Shown piece by piece: positions 8,703 through 41,738 of a DNA stretch of 64,000 bases (the stretch's first letter is position 1; each line of letters opens with the position of its first letter). Made by a program: the position numbers and the translations under genes. Origin of the DNA: Macrostomum hystrix (taxonomy: Eukaryota > Animalia > Platyhelminthes). Location: the NCBI GenBank assembly GCA_950097015.1, contig CATNEN010000013.1, positions 62,001 through 126,000 on the forward strand. The letters run 5' to 3'. Below the pieces are notes generated by a model. That model did not search any database. It worked only from the letters and a program-made list of their open reading frames with translations, and had not been told where the DNA came from.

Positions 8703-11700
8703 GCCTTCCAACTTTCAGCTATAGGCTGTTCTCTCTCTCACTGGCTCCATTTTCTTTTTTACCGTTCAAAAATTCTACGTGTAAGCTAAAGACTGCCGGG
8801 CCAATCACCAGTGAAACCCTCTCCCTACTCCTGCGTCTCCATCACAGACGCCGACTTTCTCCATAGCTCTCTGTTTGTACTTTGCTTGCCCGCCTCACTC
8901 TCTACTGCCTCACTTCACTTGACTTCACTTGACTCAAGTTAAACTGCTAGCAACACTGCTAGCCAATGAGGCTTGGATCTTGGACTGAGGCACTCTGAAT
9001 TGGCCTTTTGTTTCTAAACAGAAATCACCATTGATTGGCAGTCGCCAAAACGCCCTCTCTCTCTTTCCCAGTGTCCTCTACCCTTGGTTTCCTCTTCGGC
9101 AAAAATGACATGCTTGAAAGCAGCACCGTGTGCTTGTCATCCATTCTTCTCCTTTCTCTCTAGCTATCTTTGCCCTTCCTTTTTCTGTTCAGTTTCCATG
9201 CCTTGGAGACTGGCTCTAAGTGCTGGCTCTACATAGCAACAGTCCCAGCCTGCTGACACATTGTTAGTTTTTCTTGCCAAATTGTCTCCAGAGCCGCTTC
9301 GGTTAAGCCACTACAATTTTTGTTCTATTGCTTGTAACGCACTGAAGAGGCCTTTGTGCTCCTGGATTTCTCTGTTACAACAGTCTTCTGTGTTACGGCA
9401 AGCTAAACTGCTTTACTGTAGCAAGCTTTCTAGGCCTTTTATTATATACACGGGAGCAGTATTATTTCGAATAGCATCACGAGTTGTGAATGACAAATAA
9501 AAAACTATGATTCATTCTAGATCTCATATCTACCCAATTCAAAATCCATCAATAAGAATGTTCTAGGTCTCATACCGTACTAAAAGCAGATGTCATCAAT
9601 TTTTGGTCCGAATTCTAACAACAAGCTTTTTGTAAAGACAAAACAACATACAAAAGTACATTGAAAATACAGGTTTGTCTCTCACCCGGAGGCGGCATGC
9701 CACTGATGGAGACCTTCCACAGGCTCTTTGTCTGCGGCCTGGCTTTTGGTCCCATTTCCATCAGGCGCCTGAAGAAAAAAATATTCGCGTTAATAGTTCG
9801 CAATCACTCGTATCCTTTTAGAAGAATTCCAGCAGTAGTGCTACTAAAAGTAATAAGCATATCCAACGGAAATATTGAGTAAAATATAGGTATCATGTCA
9901 ATTGACTTCTCTGGTGTTATAATTTGATAATATGATACTACTAATACTTAACAATTTAAATAAAAATAATCAAACTACCTCAAAAAATTGTTTAAGTAGC
10001 ATTTGTTTAAATGCTCCGACTGTGGTTATAACAAATTATAGCAGAAGCAGCGATAGCAGCTCTCCAAATTTCCCACACCAAACATCAATTCTTTTCACTG
10101 AAATAAAAGAAATCTAAACAAATATTTACAAAATTCACCGCAAAATATCATAGATAGAGAAGTGAGTGCATGCTGCACTGCCTACTAACAGCAGTATCTT
10201 AGTGTGGCAAAGATACGACAGCTATTAAAATGAAACCAAAACTAAACGGCTATCGTATAAAATATCTACCTGCTGAGAAATTGGCTAAAACGGCGAGCAA
10301 TGAGACGATAACTTTAGTCAGAAACGTTTTGCGACTAAACTGATATGTTATTGATCATCCATTCTAGCCCTGTTTGCCAAGTTGAATTCGCAAATGTTAC
10401 AATTTGTTTGCACTAATTGCACACTAGACTTTGCTCTGTAAACCAACTGTTTGCTAATTGATTCCGAAAGGTTTGGCAATCTTATTAGTGATTGTGACTT
10501 TTTCAATCCAAAAAGGCAACAGAAAGACCCCGTCGCGACAAAATTTGTTTCGGAAAATGGGCTATCGCGGTAAAACAATTTTCTCTAGTCCTCATTTCAG
10601 TTCTCATGCAAGGAATTTCCTAAACCATTAAAGGACGTTTTCAGCGTTTCGCTCATTTAAAGGAATTAAAAGAGACTGCATGCATAGGCAAAGTTAGTTC
10701 AGTGCCTCCACAAATCTAATCGATAATCTGAAGACGTCGCAACCGTTTTCAAAAGCTTTTGTTTTGTTTTTAGTTTGTTATAATGTACAACATAAATGTT
10801 TTGTTAAATAATAGTTTATTTTAAGTTATCTGGTTTGTAATAAATATTGCGTTATACGTACATATATTTTTAGGAGATGTTTATAAAACAATTATTGCTA
10901 TTGCTATTATATAAATGTACGTGTGAGTAAAATTACGTAATTGTTATCAAATCAAACTTTTTATACCGAAAGTAAAAGAAATAGAAAAAGAATGGCTGCG
11001 TTATATTGAATTTATTAACTTTTATTAAAGAATATTAATATATTATAGAAATATTATTAGTATATATATTACATGTTATTAGTAAATAAAATAGTTGTTT
11101 TTTATTTTGACTTTTTGTTTAATTTTAAAGACAATACTAAACATTTTGAATTCGGTTGAGATTTTAGCAAGTCAGGTTTGTGTCTTAAATGGTATTGGTC
11201 CTATCCCGCTGTTATTTTTATCCGGTATCATCTAGGTCTCTAGCATTCCTTGGTCTAGGAGTCCATGCATGCGAAACGTCGGCACCCGAACCCCGTCCAA
11301 TCTAATCGCTATTGACAATGTCGCCACAGATGAAGTCAGCCAATTTAATTGGCAAACTTCCGGCCATATGCGCATGGCCTGTCTGCGTTCGCCTTGTCGG
11401 TTCCCGCCAGATGCAAAAACAATACAAAAAACGATAAAAAAAGGCCACTGATAACAATAGAGAAGACTCTGCTGTGCTCAAATCCAAGCAGTTGTGACAG
11501 ACTGCTCTTTGACTAAGACCTAAGAATGACTATCGCGCGTGACATTAAGGCTTTTGAAGCGGGCTACACACACAGAGAAAGATAGTAAAAATTCTATTCG
11601 CTATCGGCCGAGTGTAAATTCTCTGACTTAAGGATCAACAAGCCTAACTGCCGCTATAGAAGAACTAAATTTTGGCACCAATTAGAGTTTTTACAGAAGA

Positions 11701-11780
11701 AAGAATAATCATTTCGGTGAAAATTTATAACACAGATCAAAAACGCAGCTGAACACCCCAAATTCAGTTGAATACCAGAG

Positions 11781-12195
11781 ACACAGTTTAGCGCCCTAAA
11801 CACAATTAAACACCCGAGTACAGTTAACCATTCTAGACACAGTTAAACAACCCTAGACACAGTTAAACACCCTAGACACAGTTAAACACCCTAGACACAG
11901 TTAAACACCCTAGACACAGTTAAACACCCTAAACACCCTAGACACAGTTAAACACCCTAGACACAGTTAAACACCCTAGACACAGTTAAACACCCTAGAC
12001 ACAGTTAGACACCCCAGACACAGCTTAACACCCTAGACAAAGTTAAACACCCTAGACACAGTTAAACACCCCAGATACAGCTTAACACCCTAGACACAGT
12101 TAAACAACCTAGACACAGTTAAACACCCTAGACACAGTTAAACACCCTAGACACAGTTAAACACCCCAAAATACAGCTTAATACTCTAAACACAC
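11781..12195. repeat. 19-bp minisatellite, ~20 copies
   Basis: Unit cacagttaaacaccctaga. Confidence 0.95.
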
Positions 12196-13196: not shown

Positions 13197-13583
13197 TTTA
13201 CAGCCAGCTTACAAGCCAGCTTACAGCCAGCTTACAAGCCAGCTTACAGCCAGCTTACAGCCAGCTTACAGCCAGCTTACAGCCAGCTTACAGCCAGCTT
13301 ACAGCCAGCTTACAGCCAGCTTACAGCCAGCTTACAAGCCAGCTTACAGCCAGCTTACAGCCAGCTTACAGCCAGCTTACAGCCAGCTTACAGCCAGCTT
13401 ACAGCCAGCTTACAGCCAGCTTACAGCCAGCTTACAGCCAGCTTACAGCCAGCTTACAGCCAGCTTACAGCCAGCTTACAGCCAGCTTACAGCCAGCTTA
13501 CAGCCAGCTTACAGCCAGCTTACAGCCAGCTTACAGCCAGCTTACAGCCAGCTTACAAGCCAGCTTACAGCCAGCTTACAGCC
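13197..13583. repeat. 11-bp minisatellite, ~35 copies
   Basis: Unit acagccagctt, nearly homogeneous with occasional acaagccagctt. Confidence 0.97.
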
Positions 13584-14629
13584 AAGCTCGGCAAGAGCGC
13601 TTGTTCCAGAAACACTAAAAATACTTTCGGGCAAAGAAAAATTTTGGTGAATATTACCGTGACCGTTGGGATACTGAAGGGTCATATTGCCGAAGAAGGT
13701 CGCAATTTGAGGTGCCGCTGCGGTCGCAGAGCTGAATAGCCAAGACAATGTCAGTAGGGTCGCAGTCTAGCTGCAGTCTGGAGTCGTTCTGGACATCATC
13801 GTCGGCTCCGCTTCACAGCAAAGATGGCAAGCCAAGGCACTGCGAATTGCCAGTCGCTGCAAGGGAGTTTCTCTTGTCTTACGAAAGAAGGTAAGCGGCC
13901 TGCAGCCACTCCTATTTGGGTGCTTGGCTGAGGGAGCAAAAAGTGGCTTTGAAAAAAATTTCGCCTCCATCTTACTGGGTCTTCCCACGGGGCGCCAGCC
14001 GTCACCACCGCTGCGGTTGGCTGGGGGCCGGTTGGAGGGTCCACAAGATTGTGGAGCGGGACCCTGCCCCCCTCGGACCGCTTGGCCAGTTGGCATGGCA
14101 ACTAAGGGAATGAAGGGCTAAGTCAAACAGTGTTATCCCCCCCCCCAACCAGTCTCGGCTTAGCCCAGTGAAACAGCCTCCAATGCCAGTGGAGAGTCCA
14201 GCCACACTCATTCCAGTCTCTAAATATTAGGCCAAATTTTAATAGTATTGTTTTTAAAATATTGAATAAACGGGATTACTTTGGAATTCATTGATTTAAT
14301 AACGAAAAACAACTGACAATGCGGCTTAAAAGCATAGTCACCTAGGGATCGAGCCTGCCCCACTGCACTGCTGCTTATCAGTGCTTATCGAATGCAACTT
14401 CGAGTTCTGCTCACCGATAGCCGACGCATTTAGGTCGTATTGCCGCGTAGGACATTTTTCTCCTCCCACGCGATTTTAGTGCCCAGCAGAAACTATTCAG
14501 CAAACACTATAAACCCATGAGTCTGCTTACCCTGCCTATTAGAGCAACTGTTCATGCGCTGCATTTTTTAAAGGACAGAAGAACTTCTAAACTATACCGA
14601 AATAGGTGAGATATCTAACAAGCCTCATC

Positions 14630-15485
14630 TATCAATCCACATCCATCAATAAATCCACATCCGTCTGGCAATCCTCCATTCATCTATCAATCCTCCATCG
14701 ATCAATCAAACATCCATCCATCTATCAAACATCCATCCATCTGTCAACCCTCCATCCATCTATCAATCCTCCATCCATCTGTCAATGATCCATCCATCTA
14801 TCAATCCTCCATCCATCTATCAATCCATCATCCATCAACCAATCCTCAATCCATCAATCAATCCTCCATCCATCAATCAATCCTCCATCCATCAATCAAT
14901 CCTCCATCCATCTATCAATCCACCATCTATCAATCAATCCTCCACCCATCTATCAATCCTCCATCCATCAATCAACCCTCCATCCATCAATCAACCCTCC
15001 ATCCATCAATCGACCCTCCATCTGTTAAGCATTCATCCATCTATCAATCCCCACCCATCTATCAATCCTCCATCCATCTGTCAATCGTCCATCCATCTAT
15101 CAATCCTCCATCCATCTATCAATCCTCCATCCATCTGTCAATCATCCATCTACCAATCATCCATCCATCTATCAAACATCCATCAATCCAAACAATCCAA
15201 ACAATCCATTCATCTATCAAACATCCACCCATCTATCAAACATCCACCCATCTGTCAAACATCCACCCATCTATCAAACATCCACCCATCTGTCAGACAT
15301 CCACCCATCTATCAAACATCCACCCATCTGTCAGACATCCACCCATCTATCAAACATCCACCCATCTATCAAACATCCACCCATCTATCAAACATCCACC
15401 CATCTATCAAACATCCACCCATCTGTCAAACATCCACCCATCTATCAAACATCCACCCATCTGTCAGACATCCATCCATCTATCA
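14630..15485. repeat. Degenerate CCAT/TCAA-based simple repeat grading into a ~20-bp unit
   Basis: atcaatcctccatccatct and atcaaacatccacccatct units; the plus strand is almost devoid of G. Confidence 0.9.
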
Positions 15486-15980
15486 ATGCCTATAGACTGG
15501 AATGCTCGCAGCTTAAATAATCATGCGTCATACTTTTTATGACAAGTACACCTGAAATGCATGTATAAAGTAGGTGAAAAGTTTTTTCTAATAATGCATC
15601 GAAAACTTTCCAGATCTGAACGGGCTGCAAAATCTATAGATCTTCACAGCCTGCTGAATTGTTCCAAAAACTAACTGCTTCCGGGAGCAAGGAGAAGCAG
15701 GAAGCACGCAGATCCCAGCACTGTATGAAAGCAGAAACAATTTGAATTGTGTTTGCAGCCTATACAGTTTGCTGTGGTCTGACCGGGCAACTCTCGCCAG
15801 CTTTCTCCCTCCTGCACGCTAAAATAGCCCAACCTACTCAGGAAAGCAACCCGGCCCAGCTCAGCGCTGGAATAGAAAATAAAATCGAAGTCTTCATCTT
15901 CAGTACTGCGTACTCAGCGCTGGCTGGACGCACACTACTGGCTATAAAAACTTGTTTGCCGGACCAAAAAAGTGATGACC

Positions 15981-17116: not shown

Positions 17117-18452
17117 TTAGTTAAGCACGGTTGTAGCAGCCGGCCCTGGGCTCGCCAGCATTGCTAGGCCAGCCTTGCCACCGTTCATCACCCCGTTGCC
17201 CCCGACGGCGGCAGCTGCAGCGCTGGCGGCCGCAGCTGCTGCAGCAGCGGCGGCGGATGAAGCTGGTTTTGGACTGCCAGACGATTTAAATGACACCTGA
17301 AGGGTTCGGTTGCCAACTGTGTAGCCATTAAGCGACTGAATAGATAATAGGGCCTCTTCGTAGTTGCTCATCGTGACAAAGCCGAAGCCGCGGCACTTGC
17401 TCGTGCTGGGATCCCTGATAACCTTGACGGTCTGAACAGCGCCAAACGGACCAAATAGTTCCCAGAGGATGCGGTCCTCCGTCTCAGGAGCCAGGTTATA
17501 GACGAAGATGCACCAGCCGCCACTGGGTGTCATGCCACCGTTCTGAGCGACCACCGTTTGAGCCAGTAGGGCATGGTTCTGAATGCCGCCAGTGCTTGAC
17601 ATGAGGTCACCTATGCCGCCTATGCCGTTGCTGACGTGGTGGCCCTGGTAAGATTTGATATAGTTTCGGGACAGAGCAGCCAGCTGCTGAATCGGGCTGG
17701 AGATTTTGGAGGCGGCGGCGGCGGCAGCCGGTGATGGCATGTTGCACTGCTTGAGAAAACTGTTCACCAGATTGCCACCCTCCTGCCTGGTCGCACTGGG
17801 ACTGTTGGCGAACTTCACCGTGATGGCTTCGGCGCCCTCCTCCGGCTCGAATCCATTCAAACGTTTAATGGCGTCCTCGGCCTCGCTGCGTTGATCGAAG
17901 CGGATAAAAGCGACGCCACGCGACAAGCCAGTCTTGTTGTCGTACAGAATGCGCAGAGTGATGATCTTGCCGCACTGGTTGAACATTCGCTCCAGCTCGT
18001 CCTGCGTCATCTTCTTGGGCAGGCCGCAGATGTACAGATTGGCGCCTTTGATGGCCTCGGAGCTGGGGCGGGCCAGCGACACTTTGATTGTCTTGTTCTG
18101 CAGCCGCAGCCCGTTTAGCGTCTTGATGGCCTTGTCGGCTTCCTTCGGTTGCATATACTTGACGAAAGCGTAGCCGAGGCTCTCTCCAGTGGCGCGGTCG
18201 CGCACAAGTTTACAGCTCTCGACCTCGCCGATGCTAGTGAAGAGGGCACGCACATCCTCCTGAGACATAGCCGGTGGCAGGTAGTTCACTATGAGGTTGG
18301 TGCGGTTCTCTGTGGTTTGAAAGGGTGTGTTTCCGTGCGTACATTTGAAATTTTGAATGCTATACAATTGAAAATTATTACAACTCTAGTGAAGTAAACT
18401 CACCATTGTCGGTGATGCCACAGGAGGAGTTGTTGGTGTCCTTTCCCAGCAT
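17117..18452 (-). CDS. elav: ELAV/Hu-family RNA-binding protein (3 RRMs)
   Basis: Exon 1 18452-18404 (MLGKDTNNSSCGITDN, GTGAGT donor), 94-bp intron, exon 2 18309-17117. Motifs RTNLIVNYLP, SLGYAFVKY, NGLRLQNKTIKVSLARPS, ANLYICGLP, GWCIFVYNL and CRGFGFVTM are typical of ELAV/Hu. Confidence 0.95.
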
Positions 18453-19161
18453 GTCGCTAGATGTCATACCTGCAAGCGGGGCCCGGTTTTCCGAAAAAAT
18501 GACGCCGGGTAAGAAAGCGAAAAGTGCAGCCGAGCAGAGCTTTCTAACTCCTTCAGTGTGTGTATCTGACTCGCACTCGCGCGCAAGATTATCTTGCTTG
18601 CCTTGCCCCCTCAGAGTCTACTGTACTAGCGGCGAAGCTTATTCCATAAACTGAGGGTAAGGGCTGCGATGTCTATGGCCAAAACTGTGGAATCACAGAT
18701 ACGCTGCAGGCTGCACTTGCAAGAGTTTAGCCTATGCTTGTTGTCGGTAACAGTTGAAGCAGCTGATTTAACTGAAATGATAGAGCCCTGTGTGTATTTG
18801 ACTCGCGCTAAGACAAACAACGTTTTTTATAAAGATGTGAACAATAATGTAACTTTAAATTTAGTCTGACTCCTAGCTCTGAAACTTCTGTAAAGTAATT
18901 AGATGATTATAAATTTTTGATTAAATGATAATTTAAATTGCGATATCACACCTTACGCTGTACTTTTCTTGTTTTCTTGTACTTTTATTACCCTTCATCT
19001 TTGCATGATATGCAAATCTAGATTAGTCTTAGAATTTCTTTATTCATGATTCTCTCTTTAGGTTTAAATAGAGGGGTACCATTGAGTTTAGATGAATTTT
19101 CTCATTGAATCTATTGTGCCTCTCTTACTTAGGCAGTTAAATAATTTGAATTACAGGTTAA

Positions 19162-19711
19162 CAGTAGAACTACCCTCCTTGACAATTTTATGTGCTGCAC
19201 CCGAACGGAACAACGGAAGCACGCGAAACTTCAGAAAACTCGGGCCAAGTTATCGTTGCGCATATTCTGAAACAATAATCAAGCCGTCGGCTCTTCAGAC
19301 CGTCGAGACATTCAATGTTTCTGGCCGAAGGTCCGATTTTTCCCATAAGCGCTAGTGTATTTCATACAAGGCAAGGCCTTCAAAATTTATCAGCATGTCA
19401 CCCGAATGTGCCTACATATCTCCGTTCTTTAGTGGTCACCTACCTTTGTCTAGACGGATTTGCTGGACCTTCAAGGGCTACAACAGGGCGGAATAGGCCA
19501 CTATGGACACCCTGACGCGAATTTCTCCAATTTCACTGATCAAGCCTAAATACTGGGCGCAGCACGACCACAGTACATCAAGGCCTAGTCTGTCAACCAA
19601 TCAGTCACCACCAAACGCTGTTAGCATTCAGCATTTGCCAAAAATGCTTAGGGGGGGATTCCCTTCCCTTGGAATAACAACGGGCGGCAAAATGGCTTGG
19701 TAGTCCTACTG
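19162..19711. mobile_element. MITE, copy 2
   Basis: CAGTAGAACTACC ... GGTAGTCCTACTG termini, flanked by TTAA and TTGA; colinear with 3268-3868. Confidence 0.85.
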
Positions 19712-20574
19712 TTGATTCTTGTCTATGCCCAAGTTCATTGTTTCTTCACTGTTTCTTGCATTTTAAATATCAAAGATACGTGCGTGTAAAGCTGGAGCCT
19801 TTGAGATTTGAAAATTTTCGCAGTTTTGAGAGAATAGGAAATTTAAAGCATGAATTGTACTTTAACTGTACATGTATCAGTTATCTCTGAAGCCTGAATC
19901 TGAGAGGCTGGTTCCACAATACTTTTTCTTATTTTTTGCACATTGAAATCCTGATAACCCTACTGATGTCTTAAAAATGTCATTTGCGATCTGTCACCAC
20001 ATTCACCATGTCAATTTGAAATATGAGTTAATGGTCTCAACTCTAATTGATGACATGTGCGTTAGCTCTGTCATCGATACACTTTTGGTGAGTGTAACGC
20101 TTTGTAACACAGGCGAGCAGCAATATTTAAGATATCGGCTGCTGGGTTTAAGTGTGAATAAATTTTTGTCATTAAAAATAGAAATATCATTCAATTCTTT
20201 TTTAGCATTTTATCAATTTTGACATCATATCATTTTTATCATGAGTGTAAACATTCTATTTATTTGGCCTTTTTAGTGAGTTCAAACCAGAAGTAAATAT
20301 ATATTTGAAAAATGATTTAGATTTTTTTATTTTTACAATGGCCTTTCGACTCCTGCGCCGCTCCAGACTCATTCTGGCGTGGCCTACATCTGCCAGATTT
20401 TCTCTTTCTGAGAAGCCGTCGTCCTCACACTGACTAGCAGTCATGAGTTCTGGCTGTCACCGACCAATCATATGCGCTGACTGAGTATTTAACAAAAATT
20501 GCGTTTCGATATCTGCCACTTTTTTAGAGAAATCGTCAACGAATCGCAGGCAGAATAAAAAGTTCTGGTAGCTC

Positions 20575-22605
20575 ATGCTCGCTCTGGACAGTAACGACAG
20601 CGCTTTGGACTTTCCTGCCATAGCAGGGCTGCTCGAAGATGCCAACGATGGCAACAGCGAGCAGCTTCTGTGGGCAATGCTTGGCTGCAGCATGCTGGCC
20701 TCCCTGCTGCTTATCTACAGTCTGCTCGGCCTCAGCCAGAGCCGCTTTGCTCGCTACCGCCTCGGCTGCGTTCTGCTCATGCGCTGGAACTGCGCCGCCG
20801 ATCTCGCCTGCCTGTTGAACAGGTGTCTGTTTGGTCTGGCTAACCGTTACCTGAGCCCAGGAGCTGGTCGCGTTGTGGCCACCTGGCTGTGCAAGCTCTA
20901 TCACCTGAGCGATGGTGTCACAATGTGTTTCCAGGCCTGGCTGCTGGCGTTGTTCGCATTCGAGCGGGCCACAATGTGCTCGAACCCATTGGTTGGCTTG
21001 CGCCGCTTCAACTCGTTCCGCCTGCGACTCGGCTGCGGCTTGGCGTCCCTGCTCACCCTAGCCGCCTATCTGAACCACGTCTGGGTGTTCGGCGTCAGCG
21101 AGGCCGTCCTCTACACCGCCGCTGTCGCTGCTGCCGCTGCAGCCGCCGCTGCCTCCACTGGTAATAACAGCGATTTGGTAGCAAATTTAACATCAACGCA
21201 GATGCCACCTATGCAGGTTATTTACCTGTGCGGAGTCACGACCGACTTTCATCTGGTCTACCAGGTTGGTTTTTTGTGTGAAAATACTGCTGCAATTTAG
21301 GTCCAAAGGCAAATGTTGTCTATCCTTTTCATATTTGGACACTTCGAGCGTAGCCTATAGAATGCTGTTTTATTGCCTAGATGCTTCGTGTTCAGTGCCT
21401 TATTCAACTTCAATAAAAATGCGGGTAATCGAAGAGAAGTCTTTAGACTAAAGATGATTCAAAAGCAATGCTGTGTTTTGATGGTTTTCCAACAGTTTGA
21501 AAATAAAGGAAAAGTGACTGACTATAGCTTTCCTGCTGTCAAGATGTCTATTGTGTATAGCAAAGCGACTGTTGTTATCTCATTTAATGTAACAGAGTAT
21601 ATATATATTATATTCATGATAGCGGTAAAATGTTGTCCTTTCCAATACTTGTGTGCATTTTACTTAAATTGGGCATCGCGTCAAGAAAGGACATTTAGAG
21701 AGACCCGTCAAGGACAACAAGCTAGAAGCGTGCCAATTGGATTTGGCCAACGTCTTACCTAACCAGAAGTTGAGTCGAGCATTGCCAATCTTTATAAACC
21801 GACGCAGGTGGTGGTCAAGCTAGAGCTCCTTACCAATGTCCTCCTGCCGGGACTCGTGTGCGCCGGCTGCACGTCGCTGGTCGCCTATCGCCTGATTCTC
21901 GGCCGTGGCGGCTGCGCCAGAGGTGTCAACCAGGCAGAAGGAGGTGGCGTCGGCGGTGGCATTGGCAACAGTTTCAACATCGTCAGCGCAGGTGCCCGAG
22001 CCAATGGCGGCAGCGAGCGGCTGAGCCTGGTGGTCAACGCGTCCAGGCGAGCCCGGCCGGCCATGCTGGACGAGTTCAACCTGAGCGTGAAGCTGCTGCA
22101 GCTCTGCCTGGCTGTGTTCTGCTATCCGCCGTTGGCCGTGACGGGCCTGGTTCGAACCGGCTCGGTGATCGCGCAGGCCGAGGTATCGCCGGCGCTTCAC
22201 GCCTACCTGGAGATGCTGGTTCAGCCAATGAAGAACCTGCTGAGCGCCGTGGCCTTCGCTGCATTTGTCGCCAGCCACCAGTTTCGCCGATCGGCCGTCA
22301 GGAAGTCCACGCAGCGGAGATATGCTCGCAGCGGCCGCAGTAGCCAACGAAGACTTCGACACAGGCAGGGCCTGAGCCTCAATTCAGGACCCGGTCACTC
22401 GATGAGTTCCAGTGCCGGAGCCACAGTCGACCACTTCGGCACCATCAGCCTTGAAACCTATGCTGAATTTCCCGACATGGATGCCGAGTCGTCCGCAATC
22501 GAGATTGACGCCGAGATTGACGGCGACGCCGAAGGTGGCGACTGCGGCAACGGAGACAAAGATAAGCCAGTTGGCCGAGCGATGTCCATGGTCACCTGGG
22601 TTTGA
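20575..22605 (+). CDS. Divergent rhodopsin-like (class A) orphan GPCR
   Basis: Exons 20575-21264 and 21808-22605 join in phase 0. About seven hydrophobic segments, with TM3 W-L-C-K...FAFER (DRY-like), an ECL2 Cys (YLCG), TM5 LLPGLVCAGC, TM6 VFCYPP and a long Ser/Arg/acidic C-tail. Confidence 0.75.
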
Positions 22606-22948
22606 AATGCAAATGAACTTATTCTCTTATTTTAACTCTTTGTTACTCAATTGTATAGTCTGTGTGTAGGGTTTGAGATGCAAATGAACCTTTTCTCTTA
22701 TTTTAACTCTTTGTTACTCAATTGTATAGTCTGTCTGTAGGGTTTGAAATGCAAATGAACTTATTCTCTTATTTTAACTCTTTGTTACTCAATTGTATAG
22801 TCTGTCTGTAGGGTTTGAGATGCAAATGAACCTTTTCTGTTATTTTAACTCTTTGTTACTCAATTGTATAGTCTGTCTGTAGGGTTTGAGATGCAAATGA
22901 ACCTTTTCTCTTATTTTAACTCTTTGTTACTAAATTGTATAGTCTGTA
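22598..22948. repeat. 71-bp tandem repeat x5 overlapping the GPCR stop codon
   Basis: Units start at 22598, 22669, 22740, 22811 and 22882 (gggtttgaRatgcaaatgaac...). Confidence 0.95.
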
Positions 22949-24235
22949 ATTCAGAATTCGAATTTGACTTGTTTCATGCATTGGCGTCTTTTTATATTTT
23001 TTAGGTTAGAGCCGTCATGTTAATCCCAACATCGTTAATGTTATGACTGTCCGTTCTTTCTGCTGTACATTTTTGCTTTTATGACGAGTTTATGCGCTAA
23101 AAGCTTTATGATTTTTAGATATTGTGATTAGACAACTGGATTCATTTATTAATAAGTGCAGGTGTATAACGCTACCAGGTGTGTAGGAACCGGGCGCATG
23201 GGTAGGGAGTAGGGGGTTCGGTTTTTTTTATCTTTCTACGAGTTGAAACGAAATTAAGCGTAAACTGAGTATTTCCGGGGTTTTTTTCGCGTTCCGGATT
23301 TTTTAAATCGTTATAAATATCATTATAGTATGCTACCTTACCTAATAATGTGCAACAAGTTACACAAAAAATAATTTTGTTAATTAATTCATTTCGTGAA
23401 ATTTCTATAACTTGTATGATATGATATGATCTAGTTATAATTATGCTTTGTGTTGATGCTCCTCTATCTGAGTCCACACTTATTTTTTTATATTTAAAGC
23501 TAACTTTTCATTTATTTCATTGCACATTGGAGGAAATTACTGAATGATAGAATAATGAGTGAGTGAGAGAATCAAAGAGAGACAGTGCTAAATAAAATGT
23601 CAAGCCGATATGATACCATCTTTGGAGAAAAAAATATTTCGCTGAATAGAATAGATTCAAAAAAATAGAAAACTTGCTTTCTCTCGCCTTTATTCCTTTG
23701 AATCAGTTTCAGGTTATGACTTATGGTGAGATGAATCCTTGAACGGGGTTCGGGGTTAGAGGTTCGGGTTCGGGTTCTACCCGAAGCAGGATTAAAGCAG
23801 GACCCGGCCTGAATGTATCCATTTGGCTTTTGAATGACAGCACTTCTGGCGTCCTGTCTCTCCCCCTTGCCGCCCTAAAATACATTATACAGCAGCGGTT
23901 ACTGTGATCTTCCCTTCTTCGCTGCTTCTTTGAATGATGACTGCTTCAATTTCTTGCTCTCTGCCCTTCCATCGCTTGCTTGCATTCAAAATCCGTGAGA
24001 AATCCCGCCAGAGATTCGGCCGACTCAATCAGGCCGATGAATTGCCCCAAGACGAATTACCCGCAGCGCATATTTGTTACAAGTAACTGCGTAAAATATG
24101 AAGCTCCCCAATTGTAATTATTGAAATGATCGTTGGACACCCGTACATTTTCATTGCATTGTATAGTCAATGAATTGCCCTGATGAGAAATGAATGCCTC
24201 AGGTAATGAAGTCAATTGAATTCAAAAAATAAATT

Positions 24236-24552
24236 CTGATTGGTGACTGATTGGTTGACAGACTCGGCCTTGATGTACTGTGGTCGTGCTTTCTCCTAAT
24301 AATATATAGGCTTGATCAGTGAAATTGGAGAAATTCGAGTCAGGGTGTTCATAGTAGACTATTCCGACCTGTTGTAGCCCTTGAAGGTCCAGCAAATCTG
24401 TCTAGATAAAGGTAGGTGACCACCGAAAACTGGAGATGATGAAGGCACATTCGGGTGACATGCTGATGCAGGGGTGTACAGGGTGTATATGAAATTCACT
24501 AGCGCTAATGGGGAAAATCCGACTTTCGGCCAGAAACATTGAATATCTCGAT
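24236..24552 (-). mobile_element. MITE, internal fragment (copy 3, inverted)
   Basis: Reverse complement of the 3'-central part of copies 1 and 2 (e.g. ggcttgatcagtgaaattggagaaattcg, cctgttgtagcccttgaaggtccag). TIRs are absent. Confidence 0.8.
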
Positions 24553-25797
24553 GCGATGATCTTGACGATTTAATACTTCTATTTTGTCAATTTTTATAGG
24601 CATTGCATGCGCTGTAACTTCTATTCTACTATACTCATAAAAACGATACTATAGGCATAGTAAGCAACTCCGGCCCGCGTCCGGCCGTGTGGTGTGTGCC
24701 ACTGATCCTGATCCGACAGATGGGGAAGTACTCGCAACAGTTGCTGCTGCTTAAATGAATGATGTAAACATAAGTAAATTTGAGACCATCGCGAATCTGC
24801 CTTGTTGACTCGTTAGGCCGAGTGGGGACAGACAAATGTAACATGGTCCCCACAAAACAGCACGGCGGCCTAACCATATTTGGCTGGCAGCTCAAGGGTA
24901 ATTTTAGCACTCCTTTTCTCTGTCAGCGGAAGTGATAGTAATAATAATGGATCAACGAAGAAATTAAAATCATGTTTCACTTAGCCCGCATCATACAAAT
25001 ATATATAGCAACGTAAATATGGCCGGGCGTGTGGACTTACCAAACGCTCGTAAATGCTTCTATCAAAGGGTTAAAACATTTTCAAAGGAAAAGGCTATAG
25101 AAAACAAGTCATTCATTTACAATTATGTAAATATATATCAACCGTTTCTTAAAATCCAGTGCATGCCTTCGCAAACAGCTAAGATTTATGCTGCACCTTA
25201 CCTTGACGAATATACTGCTCCAATGCACATAAAATTGGGATATTCCCGGGAAATTCGAGTCTTGCCCATACACGTGGAAAATTGATCAAGTTAAATTAAT
25301 GTTGCACTATAGCTTACACGCACTAAAATTTACTGACTTACCCAGAATGCTCAACAAGTTGGTGCTGTAAGTTTAGTGCTAAAAGATGAATCGTAACATG
25401 TACAAAATTACGCATTAAAAATTTTCTAAACAGGAAATTGCGTACGGTACAAAAACAAAATGTTTTGGTTGCAATTAAATTGACATAATTTCTTAGACTT
25501 TCGTAAAAAATTCAATTTAAAATTTATTCTTCGAAAAAAACGATTGCGTTCTACGAGTACTACGAACGTATTAATTTCACGATTGACATTCACATTCACA
25601 TTCACATTCAAACAAGAGTATTGTAACTTAAAAAATAACCATTCAATTACAGCGAAACTTACAAGATCTTCTGATGCAACTAAGATAACGTTCCAAAATA
25701 AATATAATTTATTTTTGTCAATGCATAAAAGAATTACACAGCTTTAAAGTTTGTTCCTATCTCCGCAGTGTATATTCTTGTACTTTCAAAAAGTAAC

Positions 25798-26972
25798 TTC
25801 TACTGCATCAATCGCAATGAAAATTTACAAAACCTCTGATGCAATCGAGTTGATTGGATGTGTAAAATTTCAGGCTGATTCATGAAAGCGTCTGCGGGTT
25901 ATTCAATGTTAAAGTGTGTTCGTATCTCCGTAGTGTATTTTTGGGAGCCAGCTTGACATTCGCAGGCAGACACTTATACTGCATCAATCGCAATGAAAAT
26001 TTACAAAACCTCTGATGCAATCGAGTTGATTGGATGTGTAAAATTTCAGGCTGATTCATGAAAGCGTCTGCGGGTTATTCAATGTTAAAGTGTGTTCGTA
26101 TCTCGTTCCGTAGTGTATTTTTGGGAGCCAGCTTGACATTCGCAGGCAGACACTTCTACTGCATCAATCGCAATGAAAATTTACAAAACCTCTGATGCAA
26201 TCGAGTTGTTTGGATGTGTAAAATTTCAGGCTGATTCATGAAAGCGTCTGCGGGTTATTCAATGTTAAAGTGTGTTCGTATCTCGATCCGTAGTGTATTT
26301 TTGGGAGCCAGCTTGACATTCGCAGGCAGACACTTCTACTGCATCAATCGCAATGAAAATTTACAAAACCTCTGATGCAATCGAGTTGATTGGATGTGTA
26401 AAATTTCAGGCTGATTCATGAAAGCGTCTGCGGGTTATTCAATGTTAAAGTGTGTTCGTATCTCCGTAGTGTATTTTTGGGAGCCAGCTTGACATTCGCA
26501 GGCAGACACTTATACTGCATCAATCGCAACGAAAATTTACAAAACCTCTGATGCAATCGAGTTGATTGGATGTGTAAAATTTCAGACTGATTCATGAAAG
26601 CGTCTGCGGGTTATTCAAAGTTAAAGTGTGTTCGTATCTCCGTAGTGTATTTTTGGGAGCCAGCTTGACATTCGCAGGCAGACACTTATACTGCATCAAT
26701 CGCAATGAAAATTTACAAAACCTCTGATGCAATCGAGTTGATTGGATGTGTAAAATTTCAGGCTGATTCATGAAAGCGTCTGCGGGTTATTCAATGTTAA
26801 AGTGTGTTCGTATCTCCGTAGTGTATTTTTGGGAGCCAGCTTGACATTCGCAGGCAGACACTTCTACTGCATCAATCGCAATGAAAATTTACAAAACCTC
26901 TGATGCAATCGAGTTGATTGGATGTGTAAAATTTCAGACTGATTCATGAAAGCGTCTGCGGGTTATTCAATG
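25798..26972 (+). repeat. 176/180-bp tandem repeat, 6 full + 1 partial unit (left arm)
   Basis: Units start at 25798, 25974, 26154, 26334, 26510, 26686 and 26862; the last is interrupted by the LTR start TGTTGTG at 26973. Confidence 0.97.
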
Positions 26973-27004
26973 TGTTGTGATTTAATAGTTTCTATGTACT
27001 GTAT

Positions 27005-27796
27005 TTAATAGTTTCTATGTACTGTTTTTTTCGGTGCACTTTCACTGTCGCGTTGCACTTTGAGTCGCCCCCCTGCCCCTTTCTTGCTCTGCTGAAGCGC
27101 TCCAAAACCTTCTGAACTGGCGGCTCTGGTGTCCACGGCAGCCACACCTGATGTCGTCTTCCTGGAGGTCTGGTCCGAGCCTGACGGCTTGGCGGCTAGA
27201 GTAGCTGCCTCCTTTCGTCGAACGCAGCGCACAGCCTCAGCGAGAGTAGCAGGCTGTTGAAGGATCACGTACTCCTTGACGCTCTCAGTAGCCTTAATGC
27301 CCTTCTTGAATCTGTCCCTTGCAAAACTGTTGACAATCTCAGCGGGCAGCTCGTCTTCAGGGTAGGCATTCCTCGCCAGCTCCAGCAGTGCATCGGCGTA
27401 TGCCTCGTAGGTCTCGCCCTCCTTCTGCACTCGTGACTCCAGCTCCATCCGGTAATCTTCAGTCGTGCGGTGCTGCTGAAACCTTTCCAACAGAGCGTCC
27501 GTAAACTCCTGATATTCCAGATCCTCATCCAGCTGTAGATTCTCCACCGCTGCAAATGCTGTATTCAAATCCAAGAAGCTAAGCAGGTGCGGCCTTCGAG
27601 CGGCCTCCGCAATCTGCGCAGCATCACAATAAGCGTTGAACTTCTGCAACCACAGGCGAAAGTTGTCTCCACTAGAATACTTCGGCGGCTTCGCTGGCCT
27701 CTGGACATTCTGCGCTGCATTTATCTCCTGCTGCAAGGTCCGACGCACCGACGCAGTCATCAGCTCCACGAGGCGATTCACTCCTTCGTCTCCCAT
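27005..27796 (-). CDS. Ty3/gypsy-type Gag (capsid domains only, no zinc knuckle)
   Basis: Uninterrupted 263-aa ORF with PKYSSGDNFRLWLQKFNAYC, a major-homology-region-like RVQKEGETYEAYADALLELA and P-TLAEAV. It lies downstream of an LTR and PBS. The last ~29 codons come from the inverted arm. Confidence 0.85.
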   Translation of the reverse strand: MGDEGVNRLVELMTASVRRTLQQEINAAQNVQRPAKPPKYSSGDNFRLWLQKFNAYCDAAQIAEAARRPHLLSFLDLNTAFAAVENLQLDEDLEYQEFTDALLERFQQHRTTEDYRMELESRVQKEGETYEAYADALLELARNAYPEDELPAEIVNSFARDRFKKGIKATESVKEYVILQQPATLAEAVRCVRRKEAATLAAKPSGSDQTSRKTTSGVAAVDTRAASSEGFGALQQSKKGAGGRLKVQRDSESAPKKTVHRNY

Positions 27797-27940
27797 GACG
27801 ACAACAAAATCCTCGAATCACAAGATAAAAATATCACGGCAACAACAAAGCACTGGCAAAAGTCCTAGAAAACACCCCTCCTGAACAGAATCCCTAAGCT
27901 AATTAACACATGGGGTCGAGGATCCTAACAGGCACGAACT

Positions 27941-27958
27941 ATCCTGGTCACGGCACCA
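27941..27958 (-). other. Primer-binding site complementary to tRNA-His 3' end
   Basis: Minus strand TGGTGCCGTGACCAGGAT, 1 nt after the LTR end CACAACA. It matches the complement of the eukaryotic tRNA-His 3' end (TGGTGCCGTGACTCGGAT, recalled from the vertebrate sequence) at 16/18 positions. Confidence 0.8.
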
Positions 27959-27959
27959 A

Positions 27960-28675
27960 TGTTGTGTCCCGAGACGGGCCAGCCGGCTTCGCCTCTCGCT
28001 CAGGACGAGCAGGGAGGTTCAGCACTTCCGTCCTACTATGTGTCGGCCTACTGGCACAAGACGCACAGGCAGTAAGCCGGCAACCAAGGTCGCAACGAAT
28101 GCACAGGCCCTGTCGACAAAGTCCTAGTGACTGAACCCGAAAAGACAGAGGCAGACGACACTTACGTAGGCTAGCAGTGCGGGTTTGCGCTCGGGAGAGC
28201 TGGCTGAGTTGATGTATTTTTTCTGGTAGGCGGTGGTTGGGGTGCTCAACAAAACAAAACAGTCACGTCAGAGGGGGGCGAGCGCGCGCACGCCAATAAA
28301 TAAGACCTGCTCACCCAGGGTGAGCAGGGTAATACCCGATCACGGCTAAGCTGCAGCGTAGAGAGAGAAAGTAAGAGACAGTAAGAGAGAGAACCAGTCG
28401 CAGCCTCGCCAATCACGCAGGGTCAATAAGACAACTGGGCGAGCCGCGAACCAATGAGAGGGCAGGAACGGAAGATGACAATAACCGGGGGTACGCAACG
28501 TCTTAGCTCAACCAATCAGACGCCAGGGGTGAGAGAAATTGATAGGCAGGCAGGCGCAGAGCAAGAAAGGGGCAGGGGGGCGACTCAAAGTGCAACGCGA
28601 CAGTGAAAGTGCACCGAAAAAAACAGTACATAGAAACTATTAAATACAGTACATAGAAACTATTAAATCACAACA
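27960..28675 (-). mobile_element. 716-bp 5' LTR of a gypsy-like retrotransposon
   Basis: The minus strand begins TGTTGTG (28675) and ends CACAACA (27960), a 7-bp terminal inverted repeat. The PBS follows immediately, and there are several CCAAT boxes inside. Confidence 0.8.
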
Positions 28676-29324
28676 CATTGAATAACCCGCAGACGCTTTC
28701 ATGAATCAGTCTGAAATTTTACACATCCAATCAACTCGATTGCATCAGAGGTTTTGTAAATTTTCATTGCGATTGATGCAGTAGAAGTGTCTGCCTGCGA
28801 ATGTCAAGCTGGCTCCCAAAAATACACTACGGATCGAGATACGAACACACTTTAACATTGAATAACCCGCAGACGCTTTCATGAATCAGCCTGAAATTTT
28901 ACACATCCAAACAACTCGATTGCATCAGAGGTTTTGTAAATTTTCATTGCGATTGATGCAGTAGAAGTGTCTGCCTGCGAATGTCAAGCTGGCTCCCAAA
29001 AATACACTACGGAACGAGATACGAACACACTTTAACATTGAATAACCCGCAGACGCTTTCATGAATCAGCCTGAAATTTTACACATCCAATCAACTCGAT
29101 TGCATCAGAGGTTTTGTAAATTTTCATTGCGATTGATGCAGTATAAGTGTCTGCCTGCGAATGTCAAGCTGGCTCCCAAAAATACACTACGGAGATACGA
29201 ACACACTTTAACATTGAATAACCCGCAGACGCTTTCATGAATCAGCCTGAAATTTTACACATCCAATCAACTCGATTGCATCAGAGGTTTTGTAAATTTT
29301 CATTGCGATTGATGCAGTAGAAGT
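28676..29324 (-). repeat. 176/180-bp tandem repeat, 3 full + 1 partial unit (right arm, inverted)
   Basis: Reverse complement of the left-arm units, including the same diagnostic variants (tctcgttccg, tctcgatccg, tcagactga). Confidence 0.95.
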
Positions 29325-31582
29325 TACTTTTTGAAAGTACAAGAATATACACTGCGGAGATAGGAACAAACTTTAAAGCTGTGTAATTCTTTTATGCATT
29401 GACAAAAATAAATTATATTTATTTTGGAACGTTATCTTAGTTGCATCAGAAGATCTTGTAAGTTTCGCTGTAATTGAATGGTTATTTTTTAAGTTACAAT
29501 ACTCTTGTGTGAATGTGAATGTGAATGTCAATCGGGAAATTAATAGAAATAAAGGTTAAATAGTCATTTTCACATCAATTGATAGTCTTAACAATTAAAC
29601 TGTCATTTGTGTCACTGTATTTGTGCTGCTTGTGAACTGATAGCTGTTGCTATTCCATCCAATTCAGCAATTATTCTATTTTCTTTATCACCTAATACGC
29701 CTGTATATATTATTTGTCGGATCGTCGCCTAGTTTTAGTACAAAAGAATGCTTCCGTTTTGTTCTTGTTTCTGTCAGGATTCTAAAGCGTAATGTTTAAA
29801 TCATTTATTAATTAAAAAAATACTGATTATTTCACTAAATTAGTACAATAAATGTGCAATTAGTTAAAACATATATAATCACTCTTATAAGTCTTATTTC
29901 TTACTTCACCTAAATATAAATGCCTGTAAAAATATATTAATTTATATAGTATGTATATGTAATTTATTTTTTGGTGGCTTCTTCTGGCATCCCTTTTGTT
30001 CAGTGCTGGGCAAGTTAATTTAAAAAAGTAATGGAAGTTACTGGTAACATCTGTTACCAAATTCTCCAAAAATGATTTTTCATTCGTTACTTGTAACTGG
30101 TACTTTTTGATTTTTGGTAACTTCCATTACTTAGTCTATTACTTTGTTAGTAATGTCATTATTTTATTTTTTCAGATTTAAAAATAAAATAATAATAATT
30201 AATTTAAATCATTTTTAAGTCTAGGACCAGAAGGTGAATATTTTCTAAAAGCTAGCTGTGAAAGTTGCCTAGCCATTGGCATTAGACAGGACAGGTTCGT
30301 TGAAATATTATAAAAGAAAAAATATTTGCAAATATTATTATTTATTTTAACTTTTTTTGTAAATTTCAATACAATATGTGAATATGAATGAATAGAATAT
30401 TAGAATATACATTACAATATGATAGATTGATAGCCAATGTGACCGCATAAACAGTAAACATGCAAACACAAAACAAACAGGTTTATAACCTTTAGGAACT
30501 TTTCCATTTTTTTATTTTTGGCATGAGAGGAATGAATGAGATGAATGATAATGAATAAATTCCCTTGCAGCAGCAGAAGCCTTGTGAGCATGCTAGGCCC
30601 TATTGCCCAGGGATGCACGTTTAGCATGTAGGACATCCTTGGCTGCAGAGAATGCATGCTCAACTGCAGCACTAGCTGGGAGAGCAGTGTTGTAGCAGTT
30701 TCTAATGGCTATTGGCTAGTAACCAAAGACTGGAGGACTGGACTACAGAAAAAAACCTCTGTTACCGTTACTCTGTTACCCAGTTGATAAATTAACTCAA
30801 AAAAGTACAGTTTTAAGGAAAAGTAAATTTAGTTACTTTCTAAAATAACGGAGTACCGGAAGTGCCCAGCACTGCTTTTGTTTAAATGCTATCACTTGAA
30901 AACATTTTTAGTTAGCCTACCTACCTCTTTGCCCTTGCTTGCTATTACTATTATTAAATCAGCTTAGGTCTTATGTCTATATGCTTTGCCTCCATATAAT
31001 AAATATTCTAGAATACCATAGAAGCAGACTAAGATAAGCATCTATATTTAGAGAGAAGGAAGGTAAGCCACTGACAAAAGGTCACATTGATATGCAATAT
31101 TTACTCAATGAAGTCTGTACCATATCTCAAATCCATTTGTTTCACAAGTTTAATGGAGAGTTCCTACTATTTTATTTAGCTAGCTTAACTAGCCATTGTC
31201 ATTTGGTTCTTAAGAGCTCTGTTATATTCATAGCTCCAACATTTTTCATATTGTTTGAACTCTGCTTGAGTTTGATTGAGTCCCTAGTGGTAGTTAGTTA
31301 TGCTTATGCCATCCTATTGTTTCCGCCCAGCCTAATGAGAAATATCCTGAATTCTTAGTTGTCTCATTTAGTCCTTACTATAAAAATATTCTGTGTTTAC
31401 TCCATTTTATAAAGAACATAAAGAACATTTATAAATACTAATTTATCATGTATTTTTGCAGCTTTTCCAGAGCCATATAATATAATCCTTACATAAACTT
31501 GCAGATTATTTGCTACTTATTTTACACCTCCCAAGTATTTGACCATATTTGACCAAGTTAACTTTTTTAACTTTCAGCAAAA

Positions 31583-36030: not shown

Positions 36031-37097
36031 TAGTGTCACCAGATGATGTGCCATTGCCCACAGCCCTCCTGCAAATATGCATAATCACTACAATACTTAA
36101 TACACAGTATCTAAAGGCAAACTAACAGACTTAAAAGATTTCTAGCAAATGAAATGGCTAGTCAAGTCGAACTGACTGAAGTCATTTTGGTTAAATTATT
36201 AGAGCTACAATATATAGAGAAGGTGGCCAAAAAAGAGCAATAAAAATTATTGATTACTTGTGATTGACAAGACAGGACAGACAGGCTTTTAGGTCACCGA
36301 GACCGGCATGACGGCAACAGTCTATATGCGTGAGACACCAAGACAATGGTAAGTGTAACCGTGGGGAAATGCTTTAAAACATGCGACTCATTTTTTATAA
36401 TTTACACAAGCCAGGCGTCAGCAGACACCGATAATTGCAAGGTATGCAAACTGTAGAAGCTGCCGAAATAGGAAACAATGCACTAGTTAGGTAATGAGCT
36501 AATGAGATAGTTAAAAAACTAGTTATACTCGTATTGACAGGGATAGCATACGAAAATATGTTAGGCTTTGAGACGCACATAATCAGATTCTACTCGTGTA
36601 ATATATGTTAGAACAAAAGCGTGAGAATACTAATAGGGCCAAAAAATTACAAAAGGGCCAAGAATGGTAAAATTGCGAAACACTGGGTTTCAAATAGACA
36701 AAAAAGTTAAGTTGTTTTAACATTTTAACATAGAAAAATAGAAGAAAAAATATGTATAATATCTGTCCCTAACCAATCAGAACCATCATAGAACCACCAT
36801 ATGATTAAATCTCAGAGCCCAGTCAATCAGAACCACCCTACAATCAAATCTTAGAGCCCAGTCAATCAAAACCACCCTACAATCAAATCTCAGAGCCCAG
36901 CCAACCAGAACCGCGCTACGAACAAATCTCAATGCTTAACCAATTTGTATAGTGAAACAGATTATAGATAAGTACAAAATAAACGACAAATATGGAACGA
37001 TCATCATTTACAGCGATCCTTAAAAGCAACCATAAGAACCAGGGTGAGACAGAAGGGTAGAAGACAAAGGAAGGCCTGATAAGAAGAGGAGTGAGTG

Positions 37098-39152
37098 TCA
37101 CTCATTGGCGGCGGCAGCCAGGCTGGGATCCAGTGCAGCTCCGGACCAATGCATTTGAGCCTGCATCAGGGCTTCCTGAATCTCCTTGACACAGCGGACC
37201 CGATTTAGCCAGCGCTGCAGCTCCTCAACAGGCAGTCCGGCTGGGCTTTCAGCGCTTTCAGCGGCGCCCCGATACCAGATGGTGTCATCCGGGTTGGCGT
37301 TCCTGTTATTGCATAACGAGAAAAAAATAAATTTATTTCTAATCCGAATCGAGCTACGCCACACCGCTAGTGTTTCAGCTACGCCGCCTCACGAATAAGA
37401 AGAGGTGGCGACTGGAGTTTGATTGAAATATCGCGCAACAAAAGTTGAGCCTGTGTCAGAATGTTTCCTGAATCCATAACTGCGTTACGGCGCAGCAAAA
37501 ATTACTAATTGTGAAAAGACTACGATAGAAGCCGACATTTGAATTACTTGCCTATCAGTAGGCAGGTAGAACGGTTCATCCCGGCCAGTTAGCAGTGGCC
37601 GCTTAGCCAAGTAGACTTGAAACAGGCGCACCGGACACTTGGTAGGATCCGCTAGCTCGCCTAATTCGTACGTCATGCCGACAGCGTAGCCGGACCGAGG
37701 TGTGAAGCGCAGGACGGCGCCGGCCACTCCGGCGGCAGAAGGAGCCAAAGCGAACTGGCCTAGGGTGAGTTCGGCGTGCTCCTGGGCCGTGTGCAGGCCG
37801 ACATAGCGGGTGAGAATGTAGAACAGGGCGAACAGCAGCGCGTCTGGGCTGTGACAGCCGAGCTGGCGGCACTCCCACAGGTGCTGCTCCTCGATGCGGC
37901 AGACCAGGGTTCCATCGTCGGCCACACGGGCCGCGTAGCGATCCAAGATGACGTCGAGAGCGGCGGAGAAATCAGCGAATGCCGGATCGCAGAAGATGTT
38001 TTCGTCGCGGGCCTGATCAATAGCCAGATGGCCCTGTAGGCCTAGGCACAGATAGTACACAGAGTCGGCTGCGTACTCTTCTCCGCTGGGCTTGCGAACT
38101 TCGCGCACAAAACGGGCCAGAGCATCGGCGAGATTTGTCGCGTCAGTCAGTTCGGCAGGATCAGCTGGAGGGCCGGATCCGCTTTCATCGCTTGCCGCTG
38201 CGGCAGACACAGAGCGGCTCCAGTTTTTCCAGGCAGTCAGGCCGTAGGAGAACTTCAAGCTGAGCTGTTGCTGTTGCTGCTGCGGCTGTAGCAGTTGATG
38301 CGACTGGCTCCTGGCAAGGGCCACTAGAGCCGCCGCGTCCGCCGCTAGTCGGCGCTGAATTGAAGCCAGCGAAGCCAAATCAGCGGCGGCTATAGAAGCG
38401 GCTTCGATTCCTCTTCCAGCGGCCGAGGCAAGCGAGGCAGCAGCGCCGCTGGCACTAATCGGCTGCGGTCCGGAAGAGCCAATCGGCTGCAGGGCCAGGT
38501 GCGGCGGCTGCTCGGGATCCGGGAACTCTAGCAAGAGAAACACCGGCACAGGTACCGGGATAGGAACAAAGATCGGAATGGGAATAGGATCTGGCGGCAG
38601 CGGCGCCGGTGCGGGAAAGTACAGAGGCAATGGGCAGGGCAGCAGGCCGGCGGCGCCGTCACCGTATAGAGCCGCCTCGGCGTTGACAGCCGCCTGAACA
38701 GCGACGTCGGACTGAGCAGGCTTGGCCTGGAGTTGCCTGCTGACTGGCGCCGGTCTGCATTGCGTAATCTTGTTGCACAATGGCAGCGGCGCCAGCGGTT
38801 GAATCATGGCGTGCTGCTCGATTCCTAGCTGCCTCAGCATCTCAATAGGCACGTTCGGGAAGGTCGTACCCCGATTACTGGCTGTCAAGCGCTGATTCGA
38901 TCGCTGCCGCTGTTGCTGCTGCTGTTGTTGGCTTTGCGCCTGAGTACCTTCTGCGTCTGCGCCGTTAACGCTGGCAAGCATTGATTCCTCAGTGACTTCT
39001 GTAATGTCACCGACGACGTGAGTTGCCGCCGAGGCGGCCTCGGCTGCCGCCGCTGCGACTGCGGCTGCTCCAGCAGCAGCCTCGTCCTGCTGCAGCTGAC
39101 GCTGTTGCTGCCGAGACGCGAACACGACGCGTATACTGTCCGTTGTTGACAT
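37098..39152 (-). CDS. ZMYM/QRICH1/woc-like protein with a C-terminal DUF3504 (Crypton recombinase-derived) domain
   Basis: Exons 39152-37552 and 37302-37098 (GC-AG intron). Contains the Pro-rich PIPIPIFVPIPVPVPVF motif, FSYGLTAWKNW, LARFVREVRKPSGEEYAADSVYYLCLGLQ, ENIFCDP, HLWECRQLGCHSPDALL, KCPVRLFQVYLAKRP and FYL....D-IWY, as in ZMYM2/3/4 and QRICH1. Confidence 0.85.

Positions 39153-39930: not shown

Positions 39931-41738
<1,808 letters not shown>

Follow-up and report, generated by a model that had tools for sequence, protein, structure and literature searches.

Our analysis of a 64,000-nucleotide stretch of the genome of the flatworm Macrostomum hystrix (contig CATNEN010000013.1, positions 62,001 to 126,000; this whole stretch is called the window below) has revealed a near-perfect palindrome of about 4 kb, at 25569-29545, around half of a long terminal repeat (LTR) retrotransposon. 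This was demonstrated with repeat finders and by gapped alignment, which bore out the arm coordinates and anatomy given in an original prediction made from the letters of the DNA. We favour, with moderate confidence, the reading that the palindrome arose once, as a local inverted duplication with two junctions, formed by repair or replication at a young LTR insertion in a minisatellite, and that it is not a transposon. The result is best explained as an inert palindrome in which an LTR lies together with a truncated gag open reading frame (ORF).

Anatomy of the palindrome

The palindrome consists of two inverted arms:

25569-27092, plus strand: left arm, 1524 nt
28556-29545, minus strand: right arm, 990 nt

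The left arm was compared with the reverse complement of the right arm by gapped alignment, which falls into five blocks:

25569-25605 with 29545-29509: block 1, 37 nt, one mismatch (25579 A against 29535 C)
25606-25611: block 2, 6 nt surplus on the left, within a (TTCACA)n run
25612-26286 with 29508-28834: block 3, 675 nt, zero mismatches
26287-26814: block 4, 528 nt (three 176-nt units) surplus on the left; the placement of this gap within the array is ambiguous
26815-27092 with 28833-28556: block 5, 278 nt, zero mismatches

All differences between the arms, which account for 534 nt of length, are therefore one substitution, a 6-nt microsatellite indel and a 528-nt (three-unit) indel, and in this alignment the point differences are confined to the outermost 43 nt. 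A 990-nt inverted repeat with a single substitution cannot have arisen by chance. Complementarity ends abruptly at both limits, on the outside at 25568/29546 and on the inside at 27093/28555.

Each arm has the same plan, in which a unique outer segment is followed by a 176/180-nt tandem array and then by bases 1-120 of the LTR. The parts and the two junctions are as follows:

25569-25795, plus strand: left unique outer segment, 227 nt, pairing with 29545-29325; a degenerate partial repeat unit makes up the innermost 45 nt
29325-29545, minus strand: right unique outer segment, 221 nt
25576-25611, plus strand: (TTCACA)n microsatellite, 8 nt inside the outer end and one hexamer longer than in the right arm
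25796-26972, plus strand: left tandem array, units L0-L6 of 176, 180, 180, 176, 176, 176 and 113 nt (6.6 copies)
28676-29324, minus strand: right tandem array, units R3-R0 of 113, 180, 180 and 176 nt (3.6 copies)
26973-27092, plus strand: inverted copy of LTR bases 1-120, joining the array at a unit position identical to that in the right arm
27092/27093: inner junction J1, where LTR base 120 (plus orientation) is joined to gag codon 235 (minus orientation), with no complementarity past it
25568/25569, mirrored at 29545/29546: candidate outer junction J2, with unrelated flanks and without a non-palindromic target-site duplication

The sole substitution (25579) adjoins the (TTCACA)n microsatellite. 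When the repeat units were compared, L0-L2 matched R0-R2 and L6 matched R3 exactly. Units L3-L5 are found only in the left arm, and L4 has two variants that are absent from the right arm. Folding of the J1 region as single-stranded DNA gave a structure no better than that of shuffled sequence, with no special hairpin, and an Rfam scan of 24-31 kb returned no match.

The enclosed LTR retrotransposon

The spacer between the arms and the right arm together hold what is left of the retrotransposon:

27093-28555: spacer, 1463 nt, carrying on the minus strand LTR bases 121-716, the primer-binding site, a leader and the gag ORF
27960-28675, minus strand: only complete LTR, 716 nt, with ends TGTTGTG...CACAACA; its bases 1-120 (28675-28556) are part of the right arm
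27958-27942, minus strand: primer-binding site TGGTGCCGTGACCAGGA, one base past the LTR end
27796-27093, minus strand: gag from its ATG to the break, 234 codons without a stop
27796-27005, minus strand: chimeric ORF of 263 aa, made of gag residues 1-234 and 29 residues read from the inverted LTR copy

The LTR runs on unbroken only into the right arm, where bases 120 and 121 are contiguous at 28556/28555; the left arm halts at base 120. The LTR ends are 7-nt terminal inverted repeats of the TG...CA type. From these LTR ends, the adjacent primer-binding site and gag, the element is identified on sequence grounds as an LTR retrotransposon. The remnant comprises the 5' LTR, the primer-binding site and 234 gag codons; the zinc knuckles, protease, reverse transcriptase (RT), integrase and 3' LTR are absent. 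Gag is cut in codon 235 (27092/27093), upstream of the zinc knuckles seen in a related gag protein, P0001. The further marks of such an element, a pol gene of RT-RNase H-integrase order, a second LTR and a target-site duplication of 4-6 bp, are lacking. Neither pol nor a second LTR nor any other fragment of the element was detected in the 64-kb window, including by comparison with the polyproteins of gag relatives.

Searches with the gag ORF matched the Pfam family PNMA above its cutoff (E = 5e-6, 26.4 bits, cutoff 25) and Retrotrans_gag below the curated cutoff (E = 2e-3), and 708 relatives were found in a representative library. The ORF is 54% identical over 199 aa to P0001, a gag of 316 aa that has two zinc knuckles and is encoded on a Logan contig, L001, and the homology stops at residue 203. 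The layout of L001 comprises an LTR end, a primer-binding site, gag with its two zinc knuckles and the start of a protease, and its primer-binding site matches that of the present element in position. The original prediction had called the element gypsy. Its identity as an LTR retrotransposon stands on the LTR, primer-binding site and gag, and a Ty3/gypsy assignment is plausible from the gag matches alone, the superfamily being unconfirmed in a remnant that has no pol. Pfam scans of long gag relatives for the superfamily matched only fused or odd gene models and were uninformative.

Some further features of the element were observed. The primer-binding site of L001 (121-138, TGGCGCCCGAACAGGGAC) is unlike TGGTGCCGTGACCAGGA. 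We take the first 12 nt of TGGTGCCGTGACCAGGA to be complementary to the 3' end of eukaryotic tRNA-His, and TGGCGCCCGAACAGGGAC to be of the tRNA-Lys3 type; on that assumption, close gag relatives differ in their primer tRNA. At the very start of the LTR (U3), a 23-nt tandem repeat of 2.2 copies is present at 26980-27029 and 28619-28668, within the duplicated 120 nt. Three ATTGG (inverted CCAAT) motifs lie deeper in the LTR.

Order and age of events

The junction between array and LTR (...ATTCAATG / TGTTGTGATT...) is common to both arms, at the same unit position and with identical flanking units. It lies within a 176-bp unit, in agreement with the earlier proposal that the retrotransposon had inserted into a repeat unit. 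Because this junction is present in both arms with identical flanking units, it was copied and not created twice. The retrotransposon thus inserted once, and the inverted duplication followed. The duplication is also young, since 953 nt of the arms are free of substitutions and 234 gag codons have stayed open, which points to a recent event. As had likewise been proposed, an inverted copy of the array/LTR junction now occupies the place of the remaining gag, pol and the 3' LTR.

Origin of the palindrome

Based on these observations, we propose the following course of events. A minisatellite of 176-bp units would first have received a Ty3/gypsy-like LTR retrotransposon in one of its units. When the element then suffered a break or a stalled fork, repair would have copied nearby DNA off the opposite strand, either by foldback priming with a 1.46-kb loop or by two template switches of the type known as fork stalling and template switching or microhomology-mediated break-induced replication (FoSTeS/MMBIR), both routes giving the same product. 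The reverse-copied stretch would have measured about 1-1.5 kb and taken in LTR bases 1-120, the array and about 225 nt of unique flank. The copy would next have been joined to unrelated DNA, with loss of the rest of gag, pol, the 3' LTR and the sequence beyond, and the three-unit difference would have come from slippage in the array, during copying or later. The template switch or arm-templated repair invoked by the original prediction is the right class of mechanism. We infer the repair pathway, the template arm and the standing of the outer boundary as a second junction rather than a transposon end.

Several findings argue for this local inverted duplication. The arms flank a unique spacer that is continuous with one of them, and the sequence beyond is lost. 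In particular, LTR base 120 is the last base of the left arm and abuts an opposite-facing gag, as is characteristic of an inverted duplication that has a unique spacer. The array itself is explicable without a transposon, given at least 12 other tandem arrays in the window. Under foldback priming, the unbroken LTR speaks for the right arm as the original. The private variants of L4 mean either a later loss of three units from the right arm, or that the right arm and spacer are the copy and units were skipped when it was made. Synthesis near template switches is error-prone in replicative rearrangements, and the point differences near the outer boundary fit such an origin, but they fit equally well an old transposon end that escaped conversion between the arms. 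In yeast, foldback inversions have loops of up to thousands of nucleotides and stems down to 4 bp, and a second, resolving rearrangement is obligatory (PMC7467729).

Other observations weigh against a local duplication. It requires two non-homologous junctions, where a Foldback model requires one. Microhomology is unreadable at both junctions, the replaced sequence being gone, and any priming stem now lies within the arms. The left arm is longer by three units, one of them with private variants, so that the right arm would have to be the copy or to have lost units later. An outer domain followed by tandem repeats of arm-specific copy number is exactly the arm layout of Tetris and Galileo, and a target-site duplication of TA, TTAA or ATTAAT would be consistent with the ends. 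The statement that no other copy exists covers just 64 kb and collections that are ill-suited to this species.

These points lead to the alternative that the arms are older than the retrotransposon. This is essentially the model of the original prediction, and we consider it possible but on the unlikely side. A pre-existing, non-autonomous Foldback-like element, with terminal inverted repeats (TIRs) made of the outer domain and 176-bp repeats, would have received the LTR retrotransposon in its right arm; in subsequent repair the left array would have invaded the right array, copied 120 nt into the LTR and been end-joined to gag, with deletion of the middle of the element. The long inverted arms do combine a unique outer domain (227/221 nt) with internal tandem repeats, as in Foldback-type elements, even to a repeat number that differs between arms. 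A single non-homologous junction (J1) would suffice, and the outer boundary would be accounted for. If the left arm is old, left-only units with private variants such as L3-L5 are to be expected, and the sole substitution, 11 nt from the end, would lie beyond the reach of conversion between the arms. The ends would suit a TA, TTAA or ATTAAT duplication of the target, and Galileo copies without matching target-site duplications are known (PMC3573991).

Against this stands, above all, the lack of the 7-10-bp target-site duplication that FB, Galileo and Tetris make: around the palindrome ends, no direct repeat of 6-12 nt occurs at any offset except ATTAAT. The palindrome is bounded by TA and has unrelated flanks, literally as predicted, but TA, TTAA and ATTAAT are uninformative because they are palindromic parts of the inverted repeat itself. 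The shared outer boundary was also considered as evidence for a transposon end and rejected, as any inverted repeat stops at mirror positions by construction. No second copy of an arm, terminus, unit or LTR, or of any part of an arm, occurs elsewhere in the 64-kb window, whereas a genuine miniature inverted-repeat transposable element (MITE)-like element recurs there three times. Exact look-ups of the chimeric gag ORF, the 59-aa ORF of the unit and a 52-aa terminal ORF found no match in a collection that evidently lacks this species (the 555-aa host ORF described below gave none either), and a homology search with the unit ORF yielded no candidate. Exact-pattern scans of metagenome contigs for the unit and the terminus gave 0 matches, in a collection poorly suited to a flatworm. 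No transposase ORF is present in or near the element, and no Foldback elements of flatworms are reported in the searchable literature. We know of no TIR motif that the palindrome termini resemble. Further, 675 nt of perfect identity in a supposedly old arm region would require extra homogenisation, and the model postulates a family for which there is no evidence. The claim that the arms are TIRs of a mobilisable unit of the Foldback/Galileo kind is thus unsupported by the window and the searchable collections, in which neither a 7-10-bp target-site duplication nor another copy nor a transposase was found. It is improbable, in our judgement, that the arms are the ends of an undescribed non-autonomous Foldback-like family of macrostomid flatworms, with 176-bp repeats that seed minisatellites, and that an LTR promoter and a truncated capsid gene have been trapped in a unit that a transposase could move.

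We give still less weight to an assembly artefact, in which a chimeric or palindromic long read or a mis-join made the inverted copy. Chimeric reads are known to yield palindromes, and the repeat-rich genomes of the host group are hard to assemble. However, read-through artefacts give arms that meet head to head, whereas the 1463-nt spacer is unique and non-palindromic, and the differences of 528 nt, 6 nt and one base show that the arms are not a single stretch entered a second time. With unique, unrelated sequence on either side and 25 kb and 34 kb to the ends of the window, the palindrome would require two false junctions inside 4 kb. J1 also falls where the sequence is unique, and not in a repeat that might let an assembler change path. 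Hardly credible at all is a history of two independent insertions of a site-specific LTR element into oppositely oriented arrays, followed by deletion between them. Both junctions do lie at the same repeat-unit position, but the 159 nt of unit beside each are identical, including a variant that most units lack, and so are the 120 nt of LTR. This history would also presuppose two arrays that already stood in inverted orientation, and of all the models it has the most steps. It was rejected on the identity of the flanking units.

The surrounding window

The window is a gene-dense animal locus. Host genes were searched as single ORFs. The main coding features are:

17117-18367, minus strand: ELAV-like ORF, three RRMs in a single 416-codon ORF
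40668-41735, minus strand: RBBP4/Caf1-p55 exon, 335 RBBP4 residues in one exon
37485-39152, minus strand: QRICH1/DUF3504 ORF, intact, 555 aa, E about 1e-25; adjoins the RBBP4 exon
5697-8711, minus strand: 1004-aa ORF with a 24-nt repeat in 33 copies (6096-6896) and a weak, sub-threshold Cornifin/SPRR-like match
4700-5776, minus strand: further segment noted together with the 1004-aa ORF

The closest named relative of the ELAV-like ORF is from Macrostomum lignano (82%), and a Logan protein reaches 89%. Human RBBP4 gives a higher score with the RBBP4 exon than Drosophila p55 (Caf1-55) does. On these comparisons a Drosophila origin was rejected in favour of a macrostomid-like flatworm host, and no part of the window had a human look. 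The single ELAV-like ORF and the long single RBBP4 exon indicate an intron-poor gene structure. DUF3504 is presumably derived from Crypton-type tyrosine recombinases, and the ORF at 37485-39152 may be a domesticated gene or a gene of a mobile element. The 1004-aa ORF is either a gene for a repetitive low-complexity protein or an ORF made by the repeat.

The MITE-like element mentioned above is about 600 bp long, and its three copies share 74-85% identity:

3262-3870: full copy
19156-19713: full copy
24235-24551, reverse: truncated copy, 1 kb left of the palindrome

Both full copies terminate in the inverted repeats ACAGTAGAACTACC ... GGTAGTCCTACTGT. The element looks like a Tc1/mariner type, possibly with TA flanks.

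Mini- and microsatellite arrays are also unusually abundant in the window; their periods are 9-71 nt and they reach up to 1.7 kb in length:

1324-1730, 2586-2809, 6096-7086, 11779-12166, 13198-13584, 14626-15487 and 22598-22947: tandem arrays left of the palindrome
36790-36931, 40336-40520, 48800-49117, 50584-51351, 52784-53661 and 60707-62421: tandem arrays right of the palindrome

These arrays produce strong AT/GC-skew spikes at 6-8 kb and 14-16 kb, and several of them create long mechanical ORFs.

Significance

As a one-off event, the palindrome would offer a clean natural case in which an interstitial inverted duplication has a loop of kilobase size. It is datable relative to a retrotransposon insertion, because the insertion junction was itself duplicated. 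It would also illustrate truncation of a retrotransposon by a route other than recombination between LTRs, and it carries a caveat for annotation, as palindromes of such origin mimic transposons with long TIRs. If the arms were transposon ends after all, they would represent the first Foldback-type family described in flatworms, and a DNA transposon carrying parts of a retrotransposon.

Comparison with known systems

The hallmarks of pack-type capture, as in Pack-MULEs and FB-flanked composites, are multiple copies, target-site duplications and a transposase family that is known. The palindrome shares with such capture foreign sequence between long inverted repeats, but none of the three marks was found in the window and collections searched.

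The FB, Galileo (P superfamily) and Tetris elements of Drosophila have arms in which tandem repeats of about 140-220 bp, in copy numbers that differ between arms, follow a unique outer domain, and their target-site duplications measure 7 bp in Galileo and 8-10 bp in Tetris (PMC3573991, PMC4079207). Similar to these, the palindrome has their arm layout and a middle of variable foreign content, a likeness of layout in which no similarity of sequence was seen. In contrast to them, it has no 7-10-bp target-site duplication, no other copies in the window and collections searched, and no transposase. Its inner arm ends also run into a retrotransposon LTR, which marks a duplication after insertion. 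For a flatworm host, FB and Galileo are analogies and not relatives.

The enclosed element resembles the flatworm Ty3/gypsy-like elements represented by L001 and P0001 in its TG...CA LTR, its adjoining primer-binding site and a gag of the PNMA/Retrotrans_gag kind. Unlike such elements, it is cut off after gag codon 234 and retains nothing else but the 5' LTR and the primer-binding site.

Products similar to this palindrome arise in human inverted duplications and in FoSTeS/MMBIR events, as described by replication-based template-switching models. With the foldback inversions of yeast (PMC7467729) it shares inverted arms, a unique loop in the kilobase range that is continuous with one arm, a resolving second junction and one-sided loss. 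It differs from them in being small and interstitial, in lying inside a transposable element and a minisatellite, and in junctions whose microhomology is unreadable. The palindrome is a fresh instance of an already known kind of rearrangement.

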